Assembly: GCA_038496445.1 (NCBI GenBank)
Contig: JALMLS010000225.1
Span: forward strand, 62,001 to 126,000
DNA from: Trichosphaerium sp. ATCC 40318
Taxonomy: Eukaryota > Protista > Tubulinea
DNA: 64,000 nt
Direction: 5' to 3'
The notes below the pieces were generated by a model that was given only the letters and a program-made list of their open reading frames with translations, was not told the origin of the DNA and did not search any database. The first letter of the stretch is position 1. Every line of letters begins with the position of its first letter. The position numbers and the translations under genes are program-made. Positions 4,018-17,759 of this stretch are shown piece after piece.

Positions 4018-5019
4018 ATGGCAGCAACTATAGAGTTTTACTATGATATTGCCAGCCCTTTCTCATGGATAGGCTACGAGATTTTAAGCCGCTACGCTGA
4101 AAAGTACCCAAACAAATTCAAAATTGAGCTAAAGAACTGTTCTTTACTACGTGAGTACCCTCGTTACCTACAAAAAACATAATCGTTGAAATAAGAATTG
4201 AAAAACTTTCGTCAACACTTTAACCTGTCACGTGATCTGATTCAATTTTTTATAGCTATTTTCATGTCCTCAAAGAATATTGGCCCTGTATCGCAGATTA
4301 AGCAGAAATACCGTTTGTTAGACCTTAAAAGATCAGCAAAATGGGGAGGTATACGTTCAGATATTAATCTACCAAGCACGTTTCCGATTGATACGAGATT
4401 ACCAAATAGGTAACTTACGCTTTCCCAATTTTGGACCATTTTTTACAGTTTGTGTTTAGGGTGTTAGTCGCTATGAGCCAGAGTGGTGAAAGGCCTGATA
4501 AGGTTCCATCTGTTAGTAGAGAACTATGGCGCATGTATTGGTGTGATGATATTATCATTTCAAAGACAGAGAATATCGAAAAAGCAATGGCAAACGCAGG
4601 TACGTTGTCAAAACTTGTTTCTTAACAGTTTACATATTGGTCGATTTTCTTACCTTTCATAGGCTTAACCGATCAAGAAATAGCTAGGTACCTATCTCAA
4701 GCACAAACAGAGGGAGTAGCAACTATATTAAAGTACATAAAATGAAACGAAAAAAGAGTCAGCTTACACTTGTTGTTAAAACAAAACTAGGAAAAACACC
4801 AATGTTGCAATTAAAACAGGGTCTTTTGGACATCCTTGGCTTATTGTCAAACGTGAAGGGAAGAAAGATGAGGTATTTTTCGGAAGTGACAGGTAAGAAG
4901 AAGTGCAATATTGTTTAGATTTTTTTTCTGAAACTTCATTCTTTGAAAGGTACCATGTTTTATTTCCGCTCGTTGATGTTACATGGGTTGGCCCTTTCCC
5001 AAACAACTCAAAACTATAG
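4018..5019 (+). CDS. Glutathione S-transferase kappa / DsbA-family HCCA isomerase-like (multi-exon)
   Basis: N-terminal IEFYYDIASPFSWIGY, middle YRLLDLKRSA, C-terminal GSFGHPWLIV...FFGSDR. Confidence 0.85.
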
Positions 5020-5156
5020 AGGTTGAACCCTAAGTATTTAACCACAATCTGACTGATTTGAACTTAGCATTTGAATAAAACTATTGCGAATCACAAGAGC
5101 TATTTGTTTCTCGAATATTTCAACCAAACATTTTTTGCAATCAAATAGTTATTGTT

Positions 5157-5182
5157 GATACTACACTTGATCTTAGCCAAAA
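5157..5182 (-). repeat. Orphan 26-bp copy of U2 snRNA nt 15-40
   Basis: gatactacacttgatcttagccaaaa is the exact reverse complement of 7436..7461. Confidence 0.95.
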
Positions 5183-5469
5183 AAAAACCCTTTTGAACTA
5201 AGCATTTCTACTGTTGTTATTCTCAATTATCACGCAAAACAAAGTCCCGTATTTGAAGTTCTTTTCGTGAATAGAATTTCCAAGAAATCACGTTGTAGAA
5301 CATTTTTACAGAAAACAGTGTTGACTATTCTAGTCAACCGTGGCTCTGATCAATTTCTCGAAAAGCAACCCTGCAATGCATCTCACGAATAAACAAAGCT
5401 TTACTCAAGTTAGCAACGATTCTATACATCTGTTTCGTGTGCTAGGTTGTAGCTTCCAAATAGGCACTT

Positions 5470-5847
5470 CTTAAAAATGCCATTAGAAAACACCATTCAT
5501 ACTATTGGCTTGTCGAATACAAATATTATAGATGTTTCGTTAAAAGCTCAGTGGTGTACACACAATTCACCTTGAAGCTATTACTGTTTTTGGAATAAAG
5601 GCACTCAAAGATGTACATGAAATTTAATCAGCAATCCAAAAACTCCTGGCTCAAGCACCTTGGTAGTGGACTCAAATCATTGATTAATCTCGAGAAGCTA
5701 AGTTTAGATTGCTGTAGAAAGATTACAAGCTCAGGGATTAAGCACTTGATCAATCTCGAACACTTGACAGTTATGGAATGTTACTTGATTACAAATGATT
5801 GTTTGAACCAAGTTTACTTAGCTATTAATAAAGTACACCTAGTTTGA
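5470..5847 (+). pseudogene. Degenerate LRR (F-box/LRR family) fragment
   Basis: LEKLSLDCCRKITSSGIKHLINLEHLTVMECYLITNDCL resembles the LRRs at 56771..57706. The upstream part is frameshifted. Confidence 0.7.
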
Positions 5848-5879
5848 TATCACGTTCATTAATCTTTACCATTATATCT

Positions 5880-6440
5880 CTGCACGTCCCTTAAATACAG
5901 TTGGTGGTTTTGAAACACGTGACTTTTCTACTTTGATAAGACAAAGAAAGTGCTAATTGTGTTGCGTAACTCGTTTACACCCTCATTAGAAACGTTATGT
6001 CCATACATTATTACTGCCTTCACATCAGAAATATGTGAAAGCCAATCATCTGTAACATTTGTAGATCAATAGTACGTACTCCCTCAAGATACGTAGTACA
6101 TCCTACAATACTTAAGAGTAACTTTGTGTACACCAGCAAATGGAGCAGCAACTCCAGACAATGAAAGCAACATCATTTGTAGCAGCACACTGTAGAGAGA
6201 TATTTGGATACCACCAAGCGCCTTCATGCCCAACTCAGTTACTCTCGAACATGTTGCCATTTTGTAAAGATGTCTTCTAATGCTAACTAAATAATCCCGA
6301 GTCTGTGATACTCGGATAATACTCCATATCGAAGCTACGAACACCTTTGATAGATTTTAATCCTGAACTTGTGATACCTTTACAAATAAACAGTGCAGAT
6401 GACAGACACCATTAATAACCCCCGATCCCTTGTTTGTGAT
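5880..6440 (-). pseudogene. Degenerate LRR fragment
   Basis: CSRVTELGMKALGGI, FAGVHKVTLKYC and GVNELRNT pieces lie in different frames with stops. Same repeat style as 61983..63350. Confidence 0.6.
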
Positions 6441-7368
6441 ATAGCGGGTGCCTTTAAGTTTCAGAACTGCAGCAGGAAAAGCGAGATCGTTGTCTGTTGC
6501 TGGTGAGAACCGGTAAAACGTAATGTTGTGTTTTTAAGGAGTACTTCCAATAAACGAGCACATTGTGCTTTTGATGTTACATACTACAATATATACTGTG
6601 ACATATCACAACCTTAAGTACTCGTGCCCTTGTACAAAGGTTGGTTATATCATGGTATAACCCTTTATTATAAATTACATTATTGTCCCTGTCTCCCAAT
6701 CAGTCGATGACTCTTTTTACTTGCGAATCTGAACAGTTCGATATTGGTTCATATTGACGTTTTGCTACTTTCCAGCAACTCACTGTTGTAAACTGATGTA
6801 AGAACTTAGCTAGGTATTCAAGAAGTGTTGTATTCTTTAGAACTACTCTCGCAAATACAAAGTGGATATGTTACACTGTTATTTTAGTACAATCAAGACA
6901 CCTCCATATTAGGTATGCGCTCTTATATACCCTTAAATACAATCGCAAAGTTATACACATTAGCAAGGGTGTAGCACTATAGACCAATCACATAATTGTT
7001 ATAAAAAATGTAAACACGTGGTTGTTTATTCTTTATCCATGATAGCGCCTTTACTCACCAACAATTTATATTTGTTTCCATAATACAAGCATTGGAGGTA
7101 TTATGGGCGGGTTTTGGTTCATATTGAGCGTACCAGTGGACAATATTTGTCGAATAAAAAATGCTATTTTTTCTATGTGCAACTTTTTACTTGTAGTCGT
7201 TTTGCAACGTTGTGGGTGGATAAACTGTATTTTTTTCGCCATATCGCTGGTATAGTTACCACTACCGCATATAAAACGAATATCTTCGCCCACGCATTCT
7301 ACCTCACAGCCCAGTACGAAGTAGTTTTACAACTTTTCAATGAACAAAAAAAGTTTTTCTTTTGCCCA

Positions 7369-7421
7369 ACAATAAATTTAATTACTAGGCTGATAAATCA
7401 TGTTCAACGGCACCCAATAAG
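7369..7421 (+). promoter_or_regulatory. U2 gene proximal upstream region
   Basis: 53 bp identical to the upstream region of the other U2 gene (reverse complement of 17087..17139); the match stops beyond that. Confidence 0.75.
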
Positions 7422-7608
7422 TAACCTTCTCGGCCTTTTGGCTAAGATCAAGTGTAGTATCTGTTCTATTCAGTTTAATCTTGAATGGGGGACGAAATCA
7501 CAAGATTAAGCGAATTTTTTCCGGGGGCAGGGGATTGTCGGACTGGCTTGCCTTTCCACCCCTGCAATGATCTGTCAGGCCTTACACTACCCGCCAGATG
7601 AGGTCAAC
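7422..7608 (+). ncRNA. U2: U2 snRNA, variant copy with stem-loop IIb disrupted
   Basis: Hallmark 5' sequence CTTCTCGGCCTTTTGGCTAAGATCAAGTGTAGTATCTGTTCT with branch-point pairing GTAGTA, stem IIa, Sm-like AATTTTTT, stems III and IV. Has gggggacgaaatcac where the other copies have gggggacgaatgtcccccac. Confidence 0.93.
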
Positions 7609-8194
7609 TTTTTTTCTGAAATAAATAATTGTGGTTGTTTGAGGCTGTCTTCCGTACATTTATTTTCCAACTCACGTGTTATATTGTGCGATCTGTTTAG
7701 AACCATGGACTCTTTTCGCAGCCTCTATCCAGGTACATTAGTTTTCTGGGTTGTGTACCTCTACTATCGCGTATCAGCGCTTTTGTACGCGTTGGTAAAC
7801 CTTTTTCGCCAGTTGATGCTAACTATCTGCAGAAACCCTGTTTACGCGTCTAGTTTGGTTCACCAGACATTCAAAGGCGTTTTAGCATTTTTGTACGTTA
7901 AAACACATATTTTTCGCGATAATGTACTCACTACCGTTTAGACTTACGCTGTTTACCCACAGCGTATCACAGCAACCAGAGACGGCCTCCCAGGTACAAC
8001 TTTTGGTAATTTTTTTTTTTTTTGCACTGCACAAAACGCGTTTGGCTGAAAACACGTATATGGCCATCCCTACGCGCTGCAATCCTGTAGCGTGATTTGT
8101 GGCGTTTTGGTTGTGGACATTCATTTTTTTGTAACCTCAACCAAAAAGCGCTTTAATCGCAACTACAAGTGATTTTAACACACTATATTTTAAA

Positions 8195-11100
8195 TTGGAC
8201 ACTTACTTGGATTTTAGGAAGATTCTCACTTTTGTTTGGTGTTGGTCATGTCACGATACACACATCTTGCTCGGTGCTTGGACAATTGCTGATTTGTTGT
8301 TAGCAAAGTGGGTTGCAAGGTGTCATGTTGTGATAAACCGTAGCAAGAAACAGGGAGAAGAGTGTAACCACCAAATCGTATTAAAAAGTACTTGCGACTT
8401 TCATTTTTCTGTAAGACTAGCTTTATTTGTAGAAACTCCAACAACTGAAGCTCCTACTATAGATTCACCAAGTACAGAAGCACCAACCACTGAAGCGCCA
8501 ACTATAGAAGCATCAACCTCTACCACTGAAGCGTGTACAACTGCAGCACCAACTCCTACAACTCCAACGATTGATGCGCCACTATAGCCAAGGCACCAAC
8601 AATTGATGCTCCTAGCACCAACTACAGATGCACCAATAACTGCTCCTTCTACCACAAACGCATCAATAACTGAAGCACCAACAACTGATACTCCAACTAC
8701 AGATGCTCCTACCAGAAGCGCCAATTACTTTGGCGCCTACAACTGAGGTTCCACAACAGAAGCGCCTACTGCAAGTGCTCCAACAACTGAAGCACAACTA
8801 AGGTACCTACAACCGATGCTCCTACAACTGAACTGCCAACAACTGACACACCAACTACAGATGTTCCAAGCACCGAATTACCAACAGCAGAAGCTCCAAC
8901 TACAGGAGCTCCTATGACTGAGGTTGCTGCTACAGATGCACCTGATCACCGAAGTTCCAACCACAGAAGCTCCCACAACTGAAGCGCCAACAACTACTGA
9001 AACACCTACAACTGCAATCCCTACAACACTGAGGCGTCAACTACATTAGCGCCTACGACAGTAGTGCCTACCACAGAAGCTCCAACCACTGAGGTTCCAA
9101 CTACTGAAGCTGCAACTACAGAGGCGCCTACACCTGAACCTCCAACTACGGAACCTCTAACAACTGAAGCACAACTACTGGCGCTCCAACTACAGAAGCA
9201 CCTACAACGGTAGCGCTAACAACTGAACACCAATACATTTGAACAACTGACACTCCTACAACTGAAGCACCTGCTACTGAAGCGCCTACTACTGAAGCAC
9301 CAGCTACAAAGCTCCTACAACTGATGGTCCAACAACAGTAGCTCCAAACATGAGGCGCCAACAACTGCATCACCAACAACTGCAACGCCTACTACAAACG
9401 CATTTACTACAGACACCAACTACAGATGCACCAACTACTGAATCGCCTACTACAGCAGCTCCAGGAACTGAAGCACCAACAACTAAAGCTCCTACAGCAG
9501 TAGCGCCTACTACGTAGGTTCCTACTACTGATGCTCCTACAACTGGTACTTTTTATTTTGATTTTTATGTGGACTAACTTACCTTACAGAGTCTCCTACA
9601 ACTGAGGCACCAACAACAGATGCTCCTACAACTGATGGTCCAACAACAGTAGCTCCATGAGGCGCCAATGACTGCAACACCAACAACTGCAACGCCTACT
9701 ACAAACGCATTTCTACAGACACCAACTACAGATGCACCAACTACTGAATCGCCTACTACAGCTCCAGCAACTGAAGCACCAACAACTAAAGCTCCTACAA
9801 CAGTAGCGCCTACTACTGAAGCGCCTACTACATAGGTTCCTACTGCTGATACTCCTACAACTGGTACTTTTTATTTTGATTTTTATGTGGACTAACTTAC
9901 CTTACAGAGTCTCCTACAACTGAGGCGCCAACAACAGATGCTCCTACCATAGAAACGGCAACTACTTTGGCGCTTACTGAAGTTTCCACAACAGAGGCGC
10001 CTACTACAAGCGCTCCAACAGCACCTACAACTGACGCTCCAACAACTACAGCACCAACTACAGACTCCAACAACAGTAGCTCCAACCACAAGGCGCCAAC
10101 GACTGCAACACCAACTCCTACAACTCCAATGATTGATGCGCCACTGAAGCTCCTATAGCCAAGGCACCAACAACTGATGCTCCTACTACAGGGGCACCAT
10201 CTGCTGGGGCTCCAACTACAGATGCTCCAAAAAACTGCTCCTACATCAATAACTGAAGCGCCAACAACTGATACTCCAACTACAGATGCTCCTACCAGAA
10301 GCGCCAACTACTTTGGCAGCTACAACTGAGGTTCCAACAACAGAGGCGCCTACTACAAGTGCTCCAACAACTGAAGCACCTACAACAGAGGCTCCAACAA
10401 CCATGGAGGCGCCAACCACTGCAACGCCTACTACAGTGGCACCTACTACAGACACACCAACGACAGAGGCTCCAACTACAGAACCTCATGCTGCTACAAC
10501 TGAACTGCCAACAACTGACGCACCAACTACAGATGCTCCAACTACAGGAGCACCTACGACTGAGATTGCTGCTACAGATGCACGTGATCACCAAAGCTCC
10601 AACCACAGAAGCTCCCACAACTGAAGCGCCAACAACTACTGAAGCACCTACAACTGCAATCCCTCAACACTGAGGTGTCAACTACATTAGCGCCTACGAC
10701 AGTAGTGCCTACCACAGAAGCTCCAACCACTGAGGTTCCAACTACTGAAGCTGCAACTACAGAGGCGCCTACACCTGAACCTCCAACTACGGAACCTCCA
10801 ACACCTGAAGCACAACTACTGATGCTCCAACTACAGAAGCACCTACAACAGAAGCGCCAACAACTGAAAACCAAATATAGTGACTTGAACAACTGAAGCA
10901 CCTGAAGCGCCAACTACAAAGCTCCTACAACTGAGGGTCCAACAACAGTAGCTCCAACCATGAGGCACCAATGACTGCAACGCCTACTATTGTGGCGCCT
11001 ACTACAGACACACCAACGACAGAGCCTCCACCTATCGATGCAGCACCAACTACAGATACCCCTACAACTGGTACTTTTTATTTTGATTTTTATGTGGACT

Positions 11101-13090
11101 AACTTCCCTTACAGAGTCTCCTACAACTGAGGCACCAACAACAGGTGCTCCTACCATAGAAACGGCAACTACTTTGGCGCTTACTGAGGTTTCCACAACA
11201 GAGACGCCTACTACAAGCGCACCAACAGCACCTACAACTGACGCTCCAACAACTACAGCACCAACTACAGACTCCAACAACAGTAGCTCCAACAACGGAG
11301 GCGCCAACCACTGCAACGCCTACTATTGTGGCGCCTACTACAGACACACCAACAACAGAGCCTCCAACTACTGATGCAGCACCAACTACAGATACTCCTA
11401 CACCTGAAGCGCCTACAATGGAAACACCAACGACAGAAGCACCAACAACTGACACACCAAGTACATAAGCACCTACAACTGTAGCACCAAAACCAGTACT
11501 TTGTATTTTACTTTCTAAAGCAACTAACTTTCTTTGTAGAGGCACCAACTACAGAGGTCCAACAACTGCTCCCGCAACAGAAGCCAACCACTGATGGACC
11601 AACAGCCAAAGCACCAACTACTGAAGCCCCTACTACAGAGTCGCCAACAAGTGAACCTCCAACTACAGCGGCTCCTACAACTGATGCACCAACTGAAGCT
11701 CCAACCACTGCACCTTCAACTATAGCTCCAACTACTGAAGCTCCTACTACAAAGGCGCCTACAACTGAAGTTCCAACAACTGAAACTCCTACTACTGGAG
11801 CACCAACTACAGAGGCGCCAACCACTGAAGTACCAACTACAGCTTCTCCAACCACTGAAGCTCCTACAACTGATGCACCAACTGAAGCTCCAACCACTGC
11901 ACCTTCAACTATAGCTCCAACTACTGAAGCTCCTACTACAAAGGCGCCTACAACTGAAGCACCAACTACATAGACTCCAACCGCTGGTGCCCCTACAACT
12001 GAAGTGCCTACTACAGCAACAGCAGCCAACTACAATGCCACCAGTGACGCTTCCGCCAACTGGTACCTCCAACAACTGACACGCCAACTACTGAAGCTCC
12101 AACAACAGAGGCACCTACAACAGAAGCACCAACAACTGAAGCGCCAACCACTGAAGCATCAACTACTGTTGTTCCTATAACTGCTGCTACAACCAATACT
12201 CCAACAACTGTAGCACCAACAACCGATGCACCTACAACTGAACCAACAACAGGCACTCCAACAACGTAAGCTCCAACCACAGAAGCTCCTTCGACAGATG
12301 CCCAACTACTGAATCTCCAACATCTGGTATGCCAACAACCAAAGCACCAACAACTGAAGCGCCAACTGCAGCGCCTACAAACATAGTCTACAGAAGCGCC
12401 AACTGAAGTTCCAACAACTGAAACTCCTACTACTACTCTGAAGCTCCTACCACTGAAGTGCCTACATCTGCACCTAATACTGAATCCCCACTGGTATACC
12501 AACTACAGAGGCTTCAACCACCGAGGCCTCAACTGGTGCACCAACAACTAAAGCGCCAACAACACAGGCGCGTAGTGGTGACAACTGAAGCTCCAACTCC
12601 TACCACCAATCCACCCACAACCGATTATTCAACAACTGATGCCCAACAACTGGTACCAACACTGCGAGCGCTAAAAAACTAAATAGATTTAACCACGTTT
12701 AGATTGTGATGAGCCAAATGGCGATGGTACTTTTACTGCCTCTTCAGGATATTAGCATAACCATAAATTAAAGGCAAGGTTATCCACTACACTTTCTTTA
12801 TTGTAATGCTTTATTTAGGATAATTTGTTAAATAATAAACTTTCTTGTTTAAGAACACTGTGCATCTGTTTCTTGTCATTGGCGCATATAGCCATGACAT
12901 TCTTTACAAACTACTGCCAATGACAACAGATCCTTTAATAACACTAACACCTACAACAATAGCTCAAACGACAACATATCCTCCAACAACACTACCACCA
13001 GCTACTTTGTCTTCTACAATGATAAATCCTTAAATAGCGCTACCTTCAAAAGCGCCAGTACCAACAACAACAAACTCACCTAGTGTACAC
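8195..13090 (+). pseudogene. Mucin-like (A)PTTE-repeat surface protein with degenerate CUB-like domain, frame-disrupted
   Basis: About 4.3 kb of ~15-nt PTTEA units with many indels and in-frame stops. A short intron (gtacttttt...ctaacttaccttacag) is repeated. CUB-like remnant CDEPNGDGTFTASSGY...CHWRI at ~12700..12890. Start codon uncertain. Confidence 0.75.
8432..12660 (+). repeat. Coding minisatellite (consensus ~gcNccWacWacWgaR) with higher-order duplications
   Basis: Blocks ~8930-9180 and ~10570-10830 are near copies, as are ~9850-10110 and ~11060-11320. Confidence 0.9.
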
Positions 13091-13139
13091 AAACAAAAAA
13101 CAGTCGGACACTAACTCAACTTTATTTAGGTTTTCTGAA

Positions 13140-15162
13140 TTACAAAAAACGCGCAAAATCTTTTGCCAAAAACTTTGCTCTTCCAGGTCGTGGCTTGTAT
13201 GTTTTCGTCATTTCTCTCTTCCACAGGGACTTTAGTGCAATTTTGCGTCTAAGCGACTTCTTTTTGCGGTCATACATTCCTTGTAACTGACGCTTCTTGC
13301 ATAGGCTCTCCTCTTCATTTTCTGGATCCACTTTATGCGATTCAAATGCTAGACGCTCATCTGCGCTCTTTACTAACACTTCAGCTTTCAGGGATGGATG
13401 TTGTGTGAGCAACTGCTTGTAGTATGCGTTCACAACCTTGCGAATTTCATTTTGTTGGTAAGAACTCCATTTGTTAAATTCTTCAATTTTTTTGTTGTTT
13501 GTTGTGTTGCGCACCAAAGTAGGGTTGTTGTTGTAAAACTGTTCAACAGCACGTTCTTTCTCCTTTCTTAGTCTTTGATATTTTTCACAGAAATCAAAAC
13601 GGTCATGTTCTACAGACGGAGGAACAGTGCGATCATTGGGCGTTGGTGTTTCTGTAGGCGCAAAAATATCACCAATACAACTGAGCCATGTCTGCTGAAC
13701 ATCCTCGCCTGTTATGGCGCTAGTGTGATTGTAGACAATTTTAGTGACAAAATTGACATAACTACATAGGTGTGAGCACTTGTGGCAGTGAATACGTGGA
13801 GAAAAAGCAAAGGTAAACCAAAAACAAAAAAAAAAATGGTACTTACGCTAATACAACTGGAGAATCCTTTTTCCAACCACCAAGCTCTGCTAATTGTGTG
13901 TAGTCGATGTTGGAACCCCCTTTACTCAGTACAGTGATTACATACTGAGTTGCCATACCTCTGCAGCTAGAGTGGGCGGTGATTTGGCCTTTCTTGTATC
14001 CAGCAGCCTGACCACGCTTGGACATCATGTTTCCGAGTCCTTGTGCCGTGATTGGCTTGGTAGGAAAGTACAAGTTGTTTGTAGCCGCACACCACAATGG
14101 CAACTTCTTGTGTGTCTCTTTCACCTAGTAGAAGCAGTTCAGTACAGGATGAAAGAAACGTGTAACCCCACAAAAAAAGAAGTAAAAAAAGAAGGTACCT
14201 TGAATGTGTGCGTTTTTGGATCATACATCTCCAAAGCTTCTCTGTCATGTAGGTACAGCGCCAAAGCTGCCAGTGGGTTGATATCAGCAAACTCCTCGCT
14301 TTCAGTGCTATCCACAAGCCAAGTTTTGTGACACTGCTCAAAGATCTTATCTTTTTCAATGTAGACTGCCAATTTCGCGTTACCAGCCACGTGAATTATT
14401 GAGAGATCTTCCAAGCGTATTTTGTGGTGTGAATCGGCACGTTTACCCAAAAACATGTTTAGGATAAGGTATGCACGATCACGGATATTAATCGGAGTTG
14501 TTGGGGGTATATGTGCCAATATTTTGCGCAAAACAGGTATAACAATTGGCACCTTTTCTAAGAAATCTTTTTGTGTTTCTGGGTTCTTTTTTTCGCATTG
14601 CGCTAGTACTACGTTTGCTACACAAAAATTAGACTCAATGTATCAAAGTACAAAAGAAAAATCCAAAACCACGTGATTATGGCGTACTTTCTGCATGAAA
14701 TGCTTCATCAAGAGGTGGCTGTCCTTGAAGGCGTGACTCTCGCAGTAAAGATCTCAAGTAAGTTTTTCTACTGTTGTTGCGATAACCCATCTTTGTTAGC
14801 GCAACAATCCATTCCTTCACAAAATCCACCTGAAGAGGGAATATGGAAGTCTCTTCTGGGTGATAAAACCTACAAAAAGTGAGTCAATTCTAAGAACAGT
14901 ACTTGGTTACTCTAGCTAACATATGCTCTAATAATGCGTACTTTAGGAACAACGTGTAATTGGCAGATGCCCGTGCTGCTAAAACAATGCTGCCATTCTC
15001 AAAAGGTTTGCGCTCTAGATCCTGTACTGTGCTGACAATCTCCTCTATAGGAACAGTTTTGGCCATTTCTTGAAAAGCGGCTTCCAAACCTTTGCCACTA
15101 AAACGCCGCTTATATCCTTTCCTTGGTTTAAGACCATCCAGGTCAGTCTTTCTTTTACTCAT
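13140..15162 (-). CDS. Intron-containing tyrosine recombinase (phage-integrase superfamily), 573 aa
   Basis: Exons 15162-14942, 14869-14688, 14617-14199, 14124-13847 and 13761-13140 are joined by GT-AG introns and give 1722 nt in frame. Core-binding-like FPLQVDFVKEWIVALTKMGY..SRKTYLRSL; box I RDRAYLILNMFLGKRADS; box II TAHSSCRGMAT; LAELGGWKKDSPVVLAY with the Trp and catalytic Tyr. Confidence 0.9.
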
Positions 15163-15259
15163 CTGGTTGAAAGCTAACCAAGCGCTATATAACTTCTGTT
15201 GACTGTGTTGACTGCCGTTGAGTCAAGGGCAGTAAGAAAGTGTTGTCCTTTTGGTGTTT

Positions 15260-15416
15260 TCTGTTCTATTCAGTTTAATCTCTGAATGGGGGACGAATGT
15301 CCCCCACAAGATTAAGCGAATTTTTTCCGGGGGCAGGGGATTGTCGGACTGGCTTGCCTTTCCACCCCTGCAATGATCTGTCAGGCCTTACACTACCCGC
15401 CAGATGAGGTCAACCC
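15260..15416 (+). pseudogene. U2: 5'-truncated U2 snRNA (nt 39 to end)
   Basis: Begins at TCTGTTCTATTCAG and matches the intact U2 copy from there. No promoter or nt 1-38 upstream. Confidence 0.93.
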
Positions 15417-15524
15417 CTTCTCTAAACATCAAAGAAAAACAATAACCACCTTCAGACTGGGAAAGCACTCTCTATCTTAGGGTATAAATTTACCAAAAAA
15501 TTTTTACAAGTCAAAAATTTCCGT

Positions 15525-15550
15525 GATACTACACCTGATCTTAGCCAAAA
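15525..15550 (-). repeat. 26-bp copy of U2 nt 15-40 (one mismatch), antisense to and ~110 bp downstream of the U2 3' end
   Basis: gatactacacctgatcttagccaaaa. Confidence 0.93.
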
Positions 15551-16757
15551 CAAAAATCACACTTTTTCTTGTTTTCCGTTTCCAATCGCGTCATTTCAAA
15601 GCCACAGCTTAATGCTGAGAATAGAACCGTCGTACTTAAAACATCAGTTTTATTCGTTTGCTGTCTATGACCTTAAGTGATATCAAAATTTGCAATGTCA
15701 GTTTCAGTAGGCAAATGGCAAGATGATCGCAGTATTTACCCACTTACACGGTACGATCAAACATTATTCTTCCATGAGCTAAAAGCAAATTAAAATGAAT
15801 CGATGGCCTGCAAAGCTATCTCATTACTACTGAATGGTGGTATGAATGCCTCAAACACTGTTTGCGTATGTTTGCTTCAAAAAAATTAACTCACGTGTAT
15901 AACGTACTAGCGCTACACTTGCGCCTACCCCACGCTAACAGAAGCGCTCTCGCAGCATTCAAACAGAAAAGCAGTGATAATAACATGAAAACCTCCCCAA
16001 AACACTATCAACGCTGCTGTAGGCTTTGCAAACGCAGCCAGGTGTCAATTTATATGTAAATAAAAATGTTTAGTCTCGTTTTGTTAAATCACGTGTTTGA
16101 AACGGTTGGGTTCCCCAGGCAGTCATGAGGGTAGACTGCCCTTAAAAATATGAGATTTGTAAGACCTGTCAGAAGTGTCAAATCCGTCAATCTGTCATTG
16201 GTCAGATTGGGCAGAAACTGGTTTTTTTTTGTTAAAAGTCAGCCTGGCTTAAAACTTCAAACGACAATAAGTTAAACTGCAAAACTGTAAATGTATAACC
16301 TTTGTGTAACATGCGTAAGCATGTAGAACTTTAACAAAGCATGTGGTGCCATGGTAAAACGCGATTACGGATTTTGTTGCTGAGTGTCTTAGCCGTCGGT
16401 TTATGGCTACAGATTTTTGTGGATTTAAATATAGCTTCCATATCAGCGTTTTCATGGAACAGTTGCTCTCACGCATTCCATTCTTTAGACCAATAAATGA
16501 GCATCATCTTCTGAAACCTTTCGTAGTTATAATCGTGTACAATAAAACATTCAATTTCGTTGATTGATCTTTACCAACTTGCGTGAGGGTTTTGGGTCTT
16601 AGAAGGCCAGAGTGTTACAAGTACTGGCATAGGAGATGATGTGTACATATCCTAACAGTTAAAAGGGTTCATGGCAATAAATTAGGTGTTTGAAGCGTAG
16701 TGATTGTGTTGTGTGAATACGAAGGGAAACGGAAAACAAGAAAAAGTGTGATTTTTG

Positions 16758-16783
16758 TTTTGGCTAAGATCAGGTGTAGTATC
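16758..16783 (+). repeat. 26-bp copy of U2 nt 15-40 (one mismatch), downstream of and antisense to the intact U2 gene
   Basis: ttttggctaagatcaggtgtagtatc. Confidence 0.93.
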
Positions 16784-16891
16784 ACGGAAATTTTTGACTT
16801 GTAAAAATTTTTTGGTAAATTTATACCCTAAGACAGAGAGTGCTTTCCCAGTCTGAATGTGGTTATTGTTTTTCTTTGATGTTTAGAGAAG

Positions 16892-17086
16892 GGGTTGACC
16901 TCATCTGGCGGGTAGTGTAAGGCCTGACAGATCATTGCAGGGGTGGAAAGGCAAGCCAGTCCGACAATCCCCTGCCCCCGGAAAAAATTCGCTTAATCTT
17001 GTGGGGGACATTCGTCCCCCATTCAGAGATTAAACTGAATAGAACAGATACTACACTTGATCTTAGCCAAAAGGCCGAGAAGGTTA
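16892..17086 (-). ncRNA. U2: U2 snRNA, intact
   Basis: Full U2 5' hallmark, stem IIa attcag/ctgaat, stem IIb gggggac/gtccccc, Sm-like site, stem III gcagggg/cccctgc and stem IV. Confidence 0.97.
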
Positions 17087-17759
17087 CTTATTGGGTGCCG
17101 TTGAACATGATTTATCAGCCTAGTAATTAAATTTATTGTGGTTTTTTTTCTTTGCTTACAACGTCGCTATAAAAATGTACCACAGCGATTGTACGCGCTA
17201 TTATGGGTTCAAACTGCGTTTATGTTGAGAACAATTGGATAATGACTATCTTTCTTAAAACGCACATTGAATCGCTTGTACGCCTCAAAGTCACGATAAA
17301 AGACATAGAAACAAGTTCGACGAAGTATCTGCTGTACGGCGCTAAAAATTTTCTGGTAGCGATCTTGTATCTCCTAAACGCGCTTTTTCAGTGTTACCAA
17401 GGTACTACGCACTCGAAAAAAAAAAGCATTGAGAATGCTCCAAATTTCAAAGTCAAAAATAGCGAAAATCAGAAGAACCTTTATTTTTATCCAGTAAACA
17501 ATTCAGCCCTGCAATAGCCCAAGTGTTATCCAGTGGAGTATGTCGTTGCGGCGATAACGTGTACCAAACGTAAAAAACATTCGTCCGCTGAAGTACAGCT
17601 CCAATAAACAGTACCTGCACCGCCTTCGTAGCTAATAACCTCGCCTGTATGTTACTCGCGCTCACAGTGATACACTCACGAAAATAAGGTTCGCAATAGC
17701 CCTGTTTGCTTGTTGTGTTGTGGGTGGACTTCAACAACTAATAATCAAGCGAGATGGGT

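Follow-up and report, generated by a model that had tools for sequence, protein, structure and literature searches.

How has a gene for U2 small nuclear RNA (snRNA), one of the RNAs of the spliceosome, come to be cut in two, with its halves separated by 7.8 kb of inserted sequence? This question is raised by a stretch of 64,000 nucleotides (nt) from the genome of the protist Trichosphaerium sp. ATCC 40318 (contig JALMLS010000225.1, positions 62,001 to 126,000, hereafter the window), where an interrupted U2 unit lies opposite an intact, convergent one. Judging from the sequence, the answer is probably a small, Crypton-like piece of mobile DNA that enters U2 snRNA genes through site-specific recombination. 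Copies and relatives of the element were sought in the entire genome (70 Mb, 642 contigs), and coordinates of all features are collected in Table 1.

Structure of the interrupted U2 unit

Three matches to the Rfam model of U2 have been identified in the window: the intact gene on the minus strand (17086-16889, 150.9 bits), a weaker match on the plus strand that nevertheless spans the full length of U2 (7422-7613, 122.7 bits), and a third one at 15239-15419, also on the plus strand (84 bits), in which model positions 1-38 are aligned only via large deletions. Joining 7369-7459 to 15260-15583 yields 415 bp that are identical at 413 of 415 bases to the reverse complement of 16725-17139, the intact partner unit. 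As the joined flanks reproduce an intact unit, the 7,800 bp between them (7460-15259) constitute an insertion into a U2 unit, placed between nt 38 and nt 39. The last base before the insert, 7459, is U2 nt 38 in the Rfam numbering and the final A of the branch-point-binding GUAGUA. The interrupted unit has the CCACAA motif at about -55, as does every U2 type of this genome.

A 22-bp direct repeat is observed at the ends of the insert, with 7460-7481 identical to 15260-15281 and both corresponding to U2 nt 39-60. Judging by these ends, the presumed crossover must fall within the 7460-7481 repeat, and a second copy of the element, on the contig designated C395, narrows it to nt 39-48. These data agree well with the initial annotation of the window, which had proposed that joining the flanks rebuilds an uninterrupted U2 unit with two mismatches, that the left and right attachment sites (attL and attR) lie near 7460 and 15260, respectively, and that the insert starts with a variant U2 3' part having a different downstream flank: the junctions are at nt 38/39, and the variant part is found at 7460-7613. 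The left flank (5300-7360) is unique, with no alternative contig for it in the assembly, and hence no empty allele has been found there.

A second locus occupied by the element

Three copies of the element are present in the genome, one in the window and two on C395. The site specificity proposed earlier for the window element is supported by copy 1 on C395, which occupies the identical U2 position in another locus, and by contig C9, where a paralogue of that locus is unoccupied. Copy 1 lies inside a U2 unit of another promoter subtype, and its right junction is identical to that of the window; since the same element with the same right junction is found in a second U2 locus, the arrangement in the window is not a chance match. 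At the left junction of copy 1, U2 nt 1-48 are followed by non-U2 sequence, and the direct repeat is 10 bp long (nt 39-48). Read directly, this junction forms a 13-7-10-7-13 dyad centered on nt 39-48, the 10-bp core being flanked by U2 nt 19-31 on one side and by a nearly identical 13-mer in inverted orientation on the other. Simple recombinase sites are laid out in this way, and the strand exchange is therefore likely placed inside nt 39-48.

The unoccupied locus on C9 (91-94% identity) comprises an intact U2 gene, a 2-kb spacer, and a convergent truncated unit, which we call mini-U2, without any insertion; by its sequence, it is an empty paralogue and not an empty allele. The 3' flank of the U2 unit on C395 is 91.7% identical to that of the C9 paralogue and 82.8% to that in the window, and the unit keeps the local subtype at nt 1 of U2; hence, the insertion came without a conversion tract spanning the flanks. 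Moreover, the copies of the element are 95-99% identical, compared to 75-96% for paralogous host flanks. This higher similarity of the element copies fits movement after the loci had diverged.

The contig C395 (26,771 bp) is palindromic, with arms at 4474-14195 and 26351-16618, in which the flank, the U2 5' part and the element are 99.65% identical over 9.7 kb; the 2-kb spacer between U2 and mini-U2 forms the center. As both C395 copies are arms of one palindrome, the three copies correspond to two independent insertions only. In copy 2, the right end of the element is joined to mini-U2 at an 8-bp string common to the element end and U2 nt 14-21, and the patterns of substitutions mark this junction as the derived one. 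It could have originated by fold-back duplication at a short inverted homology, from a mixture of inversion isomers, or by an assembly error. The spacer itself (about 15100-15930 of C395, minus strand) contains, as seen by eye, an apparent gene of a small Ras-family GTPase with introns and the N-terminal P-loop GPAGVGKS.

The candidate recombinase gene

The gene at the right end of the element starts with an ATG at 15162, 97 bp inside the right junction, and faces inward; in our splice model, 4 of 4 introns start with GTA and end with TAG. Thus, the arrangement given in the initial annotation, with a spliced inward-facing recombinase gene at the right end, is retained, and the protein length and the distance to the junction have been revised by this splice model from 573 aa and 98 bp to 586 aa and 97 bp. 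All three copies of the gene are intact. Nine of 11 exon substitutions are synonymous and two of 11 non-synonymous (P = 3.5e-5), the ratio of non-synonymous to synonymous substitution rates (dN/dS) is 0.05-0.09, and the introns differ by 2.7%. The low dN/dS together with the excess of synonymous changes indicates that the family has been kept by selection on the protein.

In the C395 copies, candidate catalytic residues of a tyrosine recombinase are found in the canonical order, R207, K236/238, H338, R341, W371, and Y381. One of the two amino-acid differences among the copies concerns residue 341: this codon of the window copy (13965-13963) encodes Cys through a CpG-to-TpG substitution at 13965, while the Arg of H-x-x-R is present in both C395 copies and in a single-copy paralogue on contig C358. 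As Cys replaces the Arg of H-x-x-R, the window copy is probably catalytically impaired, and its movement would be possible only with help in trans.

Pfam scans of the protein were made exon by exon, not on the spliced whole protein. Exon 4 of a C395 copy matches PF00589 with E = 0.0059 (16.8 bits, the cut-off being 27.1) at profile positions 101-160 of 172, which is the correct region; the exons of the window copy have no Pfam match, and its exon 4 has a sub-threshold match to the PHROG integrase family phrog_216 (E = 0.019). By language-model features, exon 2 is similar at 0.91-0.92 to Phage_int_SAM families (the SAM-like N-domain of integrases), with no hidden Markov model (HMM) match to the SAM-like domain; exon 3 leads to NDC10_II, DUF3504, DUF3435 and PF00589, and exon 4, to PF00589 and DUF3504. 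These feature likenesses of exons 2, 3 and 4 follow the N-to-C order of the enzyme parts. NDC10_II, DUF3504 and DUF3435 are Crypton-derived families (PMC3212892, PMC11162782). The HMM match to DUF3435 reaches only E = 0.22, on the paralogue, and the GCR1_C domain was not found.

Database searches yielded little. Word-index searches with exons 3 and 4 retrieved no sequence relatives, exon 3, searched exhaustively with HMMER in 1.84 billion representatives, gave one spurious match and no real relative, and no relatives of the recombinase were seen in two metagenome scans. Sequence and profile searches of PDB produced nothing meaningful; a local hhalign comparison with 105 relatives of lambda Int was not significant, with box I alone aligned, and the AlphaFold model of the contiguous catalytic piece of the paralogue is uninformative, with a mean predicted local distance difference test score (pLDDT) of 33.6. 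The order of motifs, the sub-threshold Pfam and PHROG matches, and the language-model features point to a Crypton-type tyrosine recombinase, and we regard it as likely that the protein belongs to the tyrosine recombinases.

Internal structure of the element

The variant U2 3' part with which the window copy begins lacks 1 nt in stem IIa and a further stretch of about 5-7 nt, the loss of which eliminates stem-loop IIb; it is otherwise identical to canonical U2, except for the different 3' flank. Because the window copy carries this damaged part, its left junction reads as a full-length, altered U2. The element-borne part is specific to the window copy and absent from the C395 copies. Hence, the earlier suggestion that the element rebuilds the gene it interrupts applies to the window copy only, and there imperfectly, with stem-loop IIb gone.

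The open reading frames (ORFs) of the adjacent unique region (7609-8450) have no Pfam match. The next 4.2 kb are occupied by an array of tandem 15-, 30-, 45- and 318-bp units encoding APTTE/APTTD in one frame. Examined in 27 steps of 150 nt, the array changes its Thr/Pro frame 17 times; no more than about 160 codons in a row are free of stops, and no long open path emerged when introns were allowed for in the search. The Pfam scan shows only a low-complexity, Extensin-like similarity, and both the GC content and the GC skew differ from those of the surroundings. In our reading, the array is either a minisatellite or what is left of a mucin-like passenger after decay. An intact cargo gene was considered and rejected, given the constant frame switching and the lack of a long open path, and the initial description of the element as cargo-carrying has accordingly been dropped. 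Thr/Pro repeats are also seen in a host gene on contig C117 of the same genome (G000:C117, about 108400-110900, plus strand), where a zinc-metalloprotease motif, HEIGHNAGSEH, is followed by long repeats of this kind; this metalloprotease-mucin gene resembles the array in low-complexity sequence only.

At the right end, 15239-15259 is the segment that Rfam aligns, with large deletions, to U2 positions 1-38. No 8-mers, direct or inverted, are common to both ends of the element. A Pfam scan of all other element ORFs of at least 80 aa revealed no reverse transcriptase, RNase H, endonuclease, methyltransferase, or DDE transposase. The size of the element is in the range of 7.8-8.5 kb.

U2 genes of the genome

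At least four types of U2-like sequences are present in the genome; type D has an altered sequence directly after GUAGUA. The element is confined to type A (six intact units and fragments), and its gene is found at two of eight U2 loci; near the other U2 loci no remains of the recombinase were found, only low-complexity Thr/Pro similarity to the host metalloprotease-mucin gene. Some 105 nt beyond the 3' end of every type-A unit, U2 nt 16-40 recur in inverted orientation over 24-26 bp as a putative recombinase half-site; nothing of this sort is present in types B, C, and D. Orphan half-sites, one of them in the window at 5159-5182, stop at about nt 40, and both they and the mini-U2 units terminate near the presumed crossover region. 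All type-A units are arranged in convergent pairs, in some of which the partner is a mini-U2, built from the promoter, U2 nt 1-58 and, in inverted orientation, a piece of nt 19-28. In addition, the left end of the C395 element, in direct reading, resembles the type-A 3' flank around the inverted half-site.

The inverted half-sites, convergent pairs, mini-U2s and orphan half-sites are left unexplained by a simple insertion model. It is conceivable, if rather doubtful, that the type-A family has been shaped or dispersed by this family of elements, its conserved 170-bp 3' flank being element-derived. In that case the element would be mobile DNA travelling with, and rebuilding, a spliceosomal RNA gene. 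An active invertible cassette between the inverted half-sites was also considered and rejected, as the sequences adjoining the two half-sites differ.

Two dispersed repeats have been noted near the U2 units of the window. One, of about 590 bp, occupies about 15675-16260 in the spacer between the two units and has more than 40 copies in the genome with 77-87% identity; the other, of about 190 bp (about 5490-5675), has more than 40 partial copies with 70-80% identity.

Table 1. Features of the interrupted U2 locus, the inserted element, and related loci (coordinates without a contig refer to the window)
Feature	Coordinates	Strand	Comment
Host-side upstream (promoter) region of the interrupted U2	7369..7421	+	Identical to the region 5' of the intact partner unit
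Host-derived U2 nt 1-38, left half of predicted attL	7422..7459	+	Rfam positions 1-38; identical to the intact unit
Left copy of the 22-bp direct repeat, U2 nt 39-60	7460..7481	+	
Element-borne variant U2 3' part	7460..7613	+	Rfam; comparison with canonical U2
Unique internal region, no recognisable gene	7609..8450	.	Exactly three genome copies; 98% identity with the C395 copies
Degenerate Thr/Pro-codon (APTTE/APTTD) repeat array	8430..12650	+	Few intron-like inserts, no continuous open frame
Tyrosine-recombinase-like gene, 5 exons	13140..15162	-	Exons 15162-14903, 14869-14688, 14617-14199, 14124-13847, 13761-13140; 586 aa
Right end of the element	15163..15259	.	TATA-like box for the recombinase gene; two direct copies of the 9-nt word TGTTGACTG; degenerate U2-like 5' arm 15239-15259
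Host-derived U2 nt 39 to 3' end, right half of predicted attR	15260..15419	+	Right repeat copy is 15260-15281
3' flank of the U2 unit	15420..15587	+	Inverted copy of U2 nt 16-39 at 15527-15550
Intact convergent partner U2 unit	16725..17139	-	Empty-site reference
Inverted half-sites in the window	15527-15550; 16758-16781; 5159-5182	-; +; -	Also on C9, C13, C117, C155
Mini-U2 unit	G000:C9:630735-630829	+	Convergent with an intact U2 about 1-2.3 kb away
Mini-U2 unit	G000:C155:65989-66109	-	Convergent with an intact U2 about 1-2.3 kb away
Type B U2	L008-L013		
Type C U2	L016-L018		
Type D U2	L019-L026 and L029		
Single-copy recombinase paralogue	G000:C358:16200-19562		30% identical in the catalytic region, tblastn 7e-14

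Proposed mechanism and alternative explanations

In the scheme that we favor, the element would circularise, and joining of its right end to its left end would create a U2-like site on the circle. The recombinase would then exchange strands between this site and a chromosomal U2 gene within nt 39-48, with the exact cleavage points presumably lying inside this core, and the left junction would thereby come to hold the promoter with nt 1-38 and the right junction the remainder of the gene from nt 39 on, with a U2 direct repeat of 10 to 22 bp. The family may still be active.

Several observations weigh against this scheme. The sequence data indicate that there are only two independent insertions, and the junction of C395 copy 2 is at nt 14-21, not at nt 39-48. 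The window recombinase is devoid of the canonical second Arg. The assignment of the protein is based on sub-threshold and feature-based evidence, with no sequence relative in any database searched. Finally, none of the public sequencing runs contains the element, the best share of 0.11 being approximately that of the U2 3' part with its flank.

An alternative to repeated site-specific insertion is a single old insertion that spread from one U2 unit to another through ordinary homologous recombination or gene conversion, the recombinase now being idle or adopted by the host. The U2 units offer a substrate for this, having about 90 bp upstream and 330 bp downstream in common, paired units are indeed homogenised (98.8% identity in the window and 100% on contig C13), and only two loci are occupied. 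However, the unit on C395 keeps its own subtype markers on both sides of the element, at nt 1 of U2 and in the flank right after the gene. As these markers hug the element, only 38 bp of homology would be available on the left, and the C395 left junction has just 10 bp of U2 in common. Strong purifying selection is seen across the recombinase copies, as expected if the element needs its enzyme, and we consider the copying explanation improbable.

Somewhat less credible still is a host recombinase system, not a selfish element, that would switch or invert U2 loci between full-length and mini units. The organisation of the type-A units, with their convergent pairs, the partners that are mini-U2s, and inverted copies of nt 16-39 that accompany these units only, is what such a system might produce, and the junction of C395 copy 2 links the element end to a mini-U2. 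Nevertheless, the sequences adjoining the inverted half-sites differ from the U2 core, so that they are not matched recombination partners; moreover, the gene is present at a minority of the U2 loci, and the similarity of the copies is transposon-like.

It is very unlikely that the protein is not a recombinase and that the insertion arose by other means, e.g., as a decayed U2 retrotransposon of the Utopia or Keno type. The downstream U2 part begins at nt 39, as it does for Utopia and Keno (PMC4640811), and the Pfam matches are below the threshold; on the other hand, there is no ORF of a reverse transcriptase or endonuclease and no poly(A) or other 3' tail in the element, each of three exons is on its own similar to the corresponding part of tyrosine recombinases, in the correct order, and no other U2 3' part starting at nt 39 is found elsewhere in the genome. 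An assembly artefact joining unrelated repeats through U2 copies, for which the suspicious palindromic 26.8-kb contig C395 might speak, is the least likely, since two contigs that differ in their flanks have the right junction in common, the copies have changes of their own (14 sites are specific to the window copy, of which 13 are substitutions and one is a 2-nt deletion, and four to C395 copy 1), and the right end of the element has its own degenerate U2-like arm and hence does not result from a collapse of the U2 repeat.

A candidate recombinase paralogue near a tRNA gene

The paralogue on C358 is located 2 kb from a tRNA-Lys(CUU) gene truncated in the 3' acceptor strand. The proximity of this paralogue to a split tRNA-Lys gene suggests that, in a deep-branching protist lineage, small RNA genes are targeted in the manner of prophages. 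To our knowledge, targeting of this style in eukaryotes has so far been represented mainly by fungal Starships in 5S ribosomal DNA (rDNA).

Comparison with known systems

Dada DDE transposons target U1, U6, tRNA and 5S genes (PMC3706591, PMC8869645) and thus resemble the element described here in being DNA transposons specific for multicopy small RNA genes. They differ from it in having a DDE transposase, terminal inverted repeats and target-site duplications, and U2 is not among their reported targets.

Utopia and Keno are U2-specific non-LTR (long terminal repeat) retrotransposons reported to have reached their site independently, with the downstream U2 starting at nt 39 (PMC4640811). The Trichosphaerium element has the same target, with the downstream U2 also starting at nt 39, just after GUAGUA, but Utopia and Keno use a reverse transcriptase and an endonuclease in target-primed reverse transcription, and the element has neither enzyme. 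If our interpretation is true, three unrelated mechanisms converge on the same U2 nucleotide, those of Utopia (restriction-like endonuclease), Keno (apurinic/apyrimidinic, or AP, endonuclease) and the recombinase element, and nt 38/39 would then stand out as unusually safe or accessible for insertion. In addition, a recombinase this compact, whose 10-bp core is defined and lies in a universally conserved sequence, would lend itself to easy testing in vitro.

Bacterial and archaeal integrative elements and prophages integrate in tRNA and transfer-messenger RNA (tmRNA) genes. The similarity to them is in the site-specific integration into a small RNA gene by what appears to be a tyrosine recombinase encoded next to the attachment site, and in the replacement 3' part brought by the window copy. 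In contrast, the element described here resides in a eukaryote and its recombinase-like gene contains introns; a replacement part, damaged at that, is found in one copy only, and no excisionase or other accessory gene was identified in the element.

Cryptons are eukaryotic DNA transposons that encode only a tyrosine recombinase, often with introns (Goodwin 2003; Kojima & Jurka 2011, PMC3212892); they have no inverted repeats, have 4-6-bp terminal direct repeats, and a circular intermediate has been proposed for them (PMC3212892). The present element similarly has a single intron-containing recombinase-like gene as its only enzyme, without a reverse transcriptase, and lacks both terminal inverted and long terminal repeats; its short end repeats are taken as the recombination substrate, a circle is likewise part of the model, and searches by features lead to NDC10_II, DUF3504, and DUF3435. 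It differs in the direct repeat, which is 10-22 bp long and lies within a specific gene, as opposed to 4-6 bp in Cryptons, in the target, a spliceosomal RNA gene, in the host, an amoeba-like protist, and in having neither a GCR1_C domain nor a detectable sequence relationship to any Crypton group. Our literature search revealed no report of a DNA element with a tyrosine recombinase that targets a spliceosomal RNA gene. On the sequence evidence, the element is of a Crypton-like kind, new in its U2 specificity.

The initial annotation had gone further and stated that no equivalent had been described. This was too strong, as several families of fungal Starships insert in 5S rDNA and have 6-16-bp direct repeats matching the gene (PMC11162782). 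Like, in our reading, the element in U2, these are tyrosine-recombinase elements in a multicopy small RNA gene, with gene-matching direct repeats and an inward-facing recombinase gene near one end. Starships differ from it in their size of tens to hundreds of kb, in the many intact cargo genes, in the DUF3435 "captains", and in their restriction to Pezizomycotina, whereas the element described here, of 7.8-8.5 kb, has no intact cargo gene and no significant match to DUF3435. By analogy, the nearest described behavior is that of the Starships in 5S rDNA.

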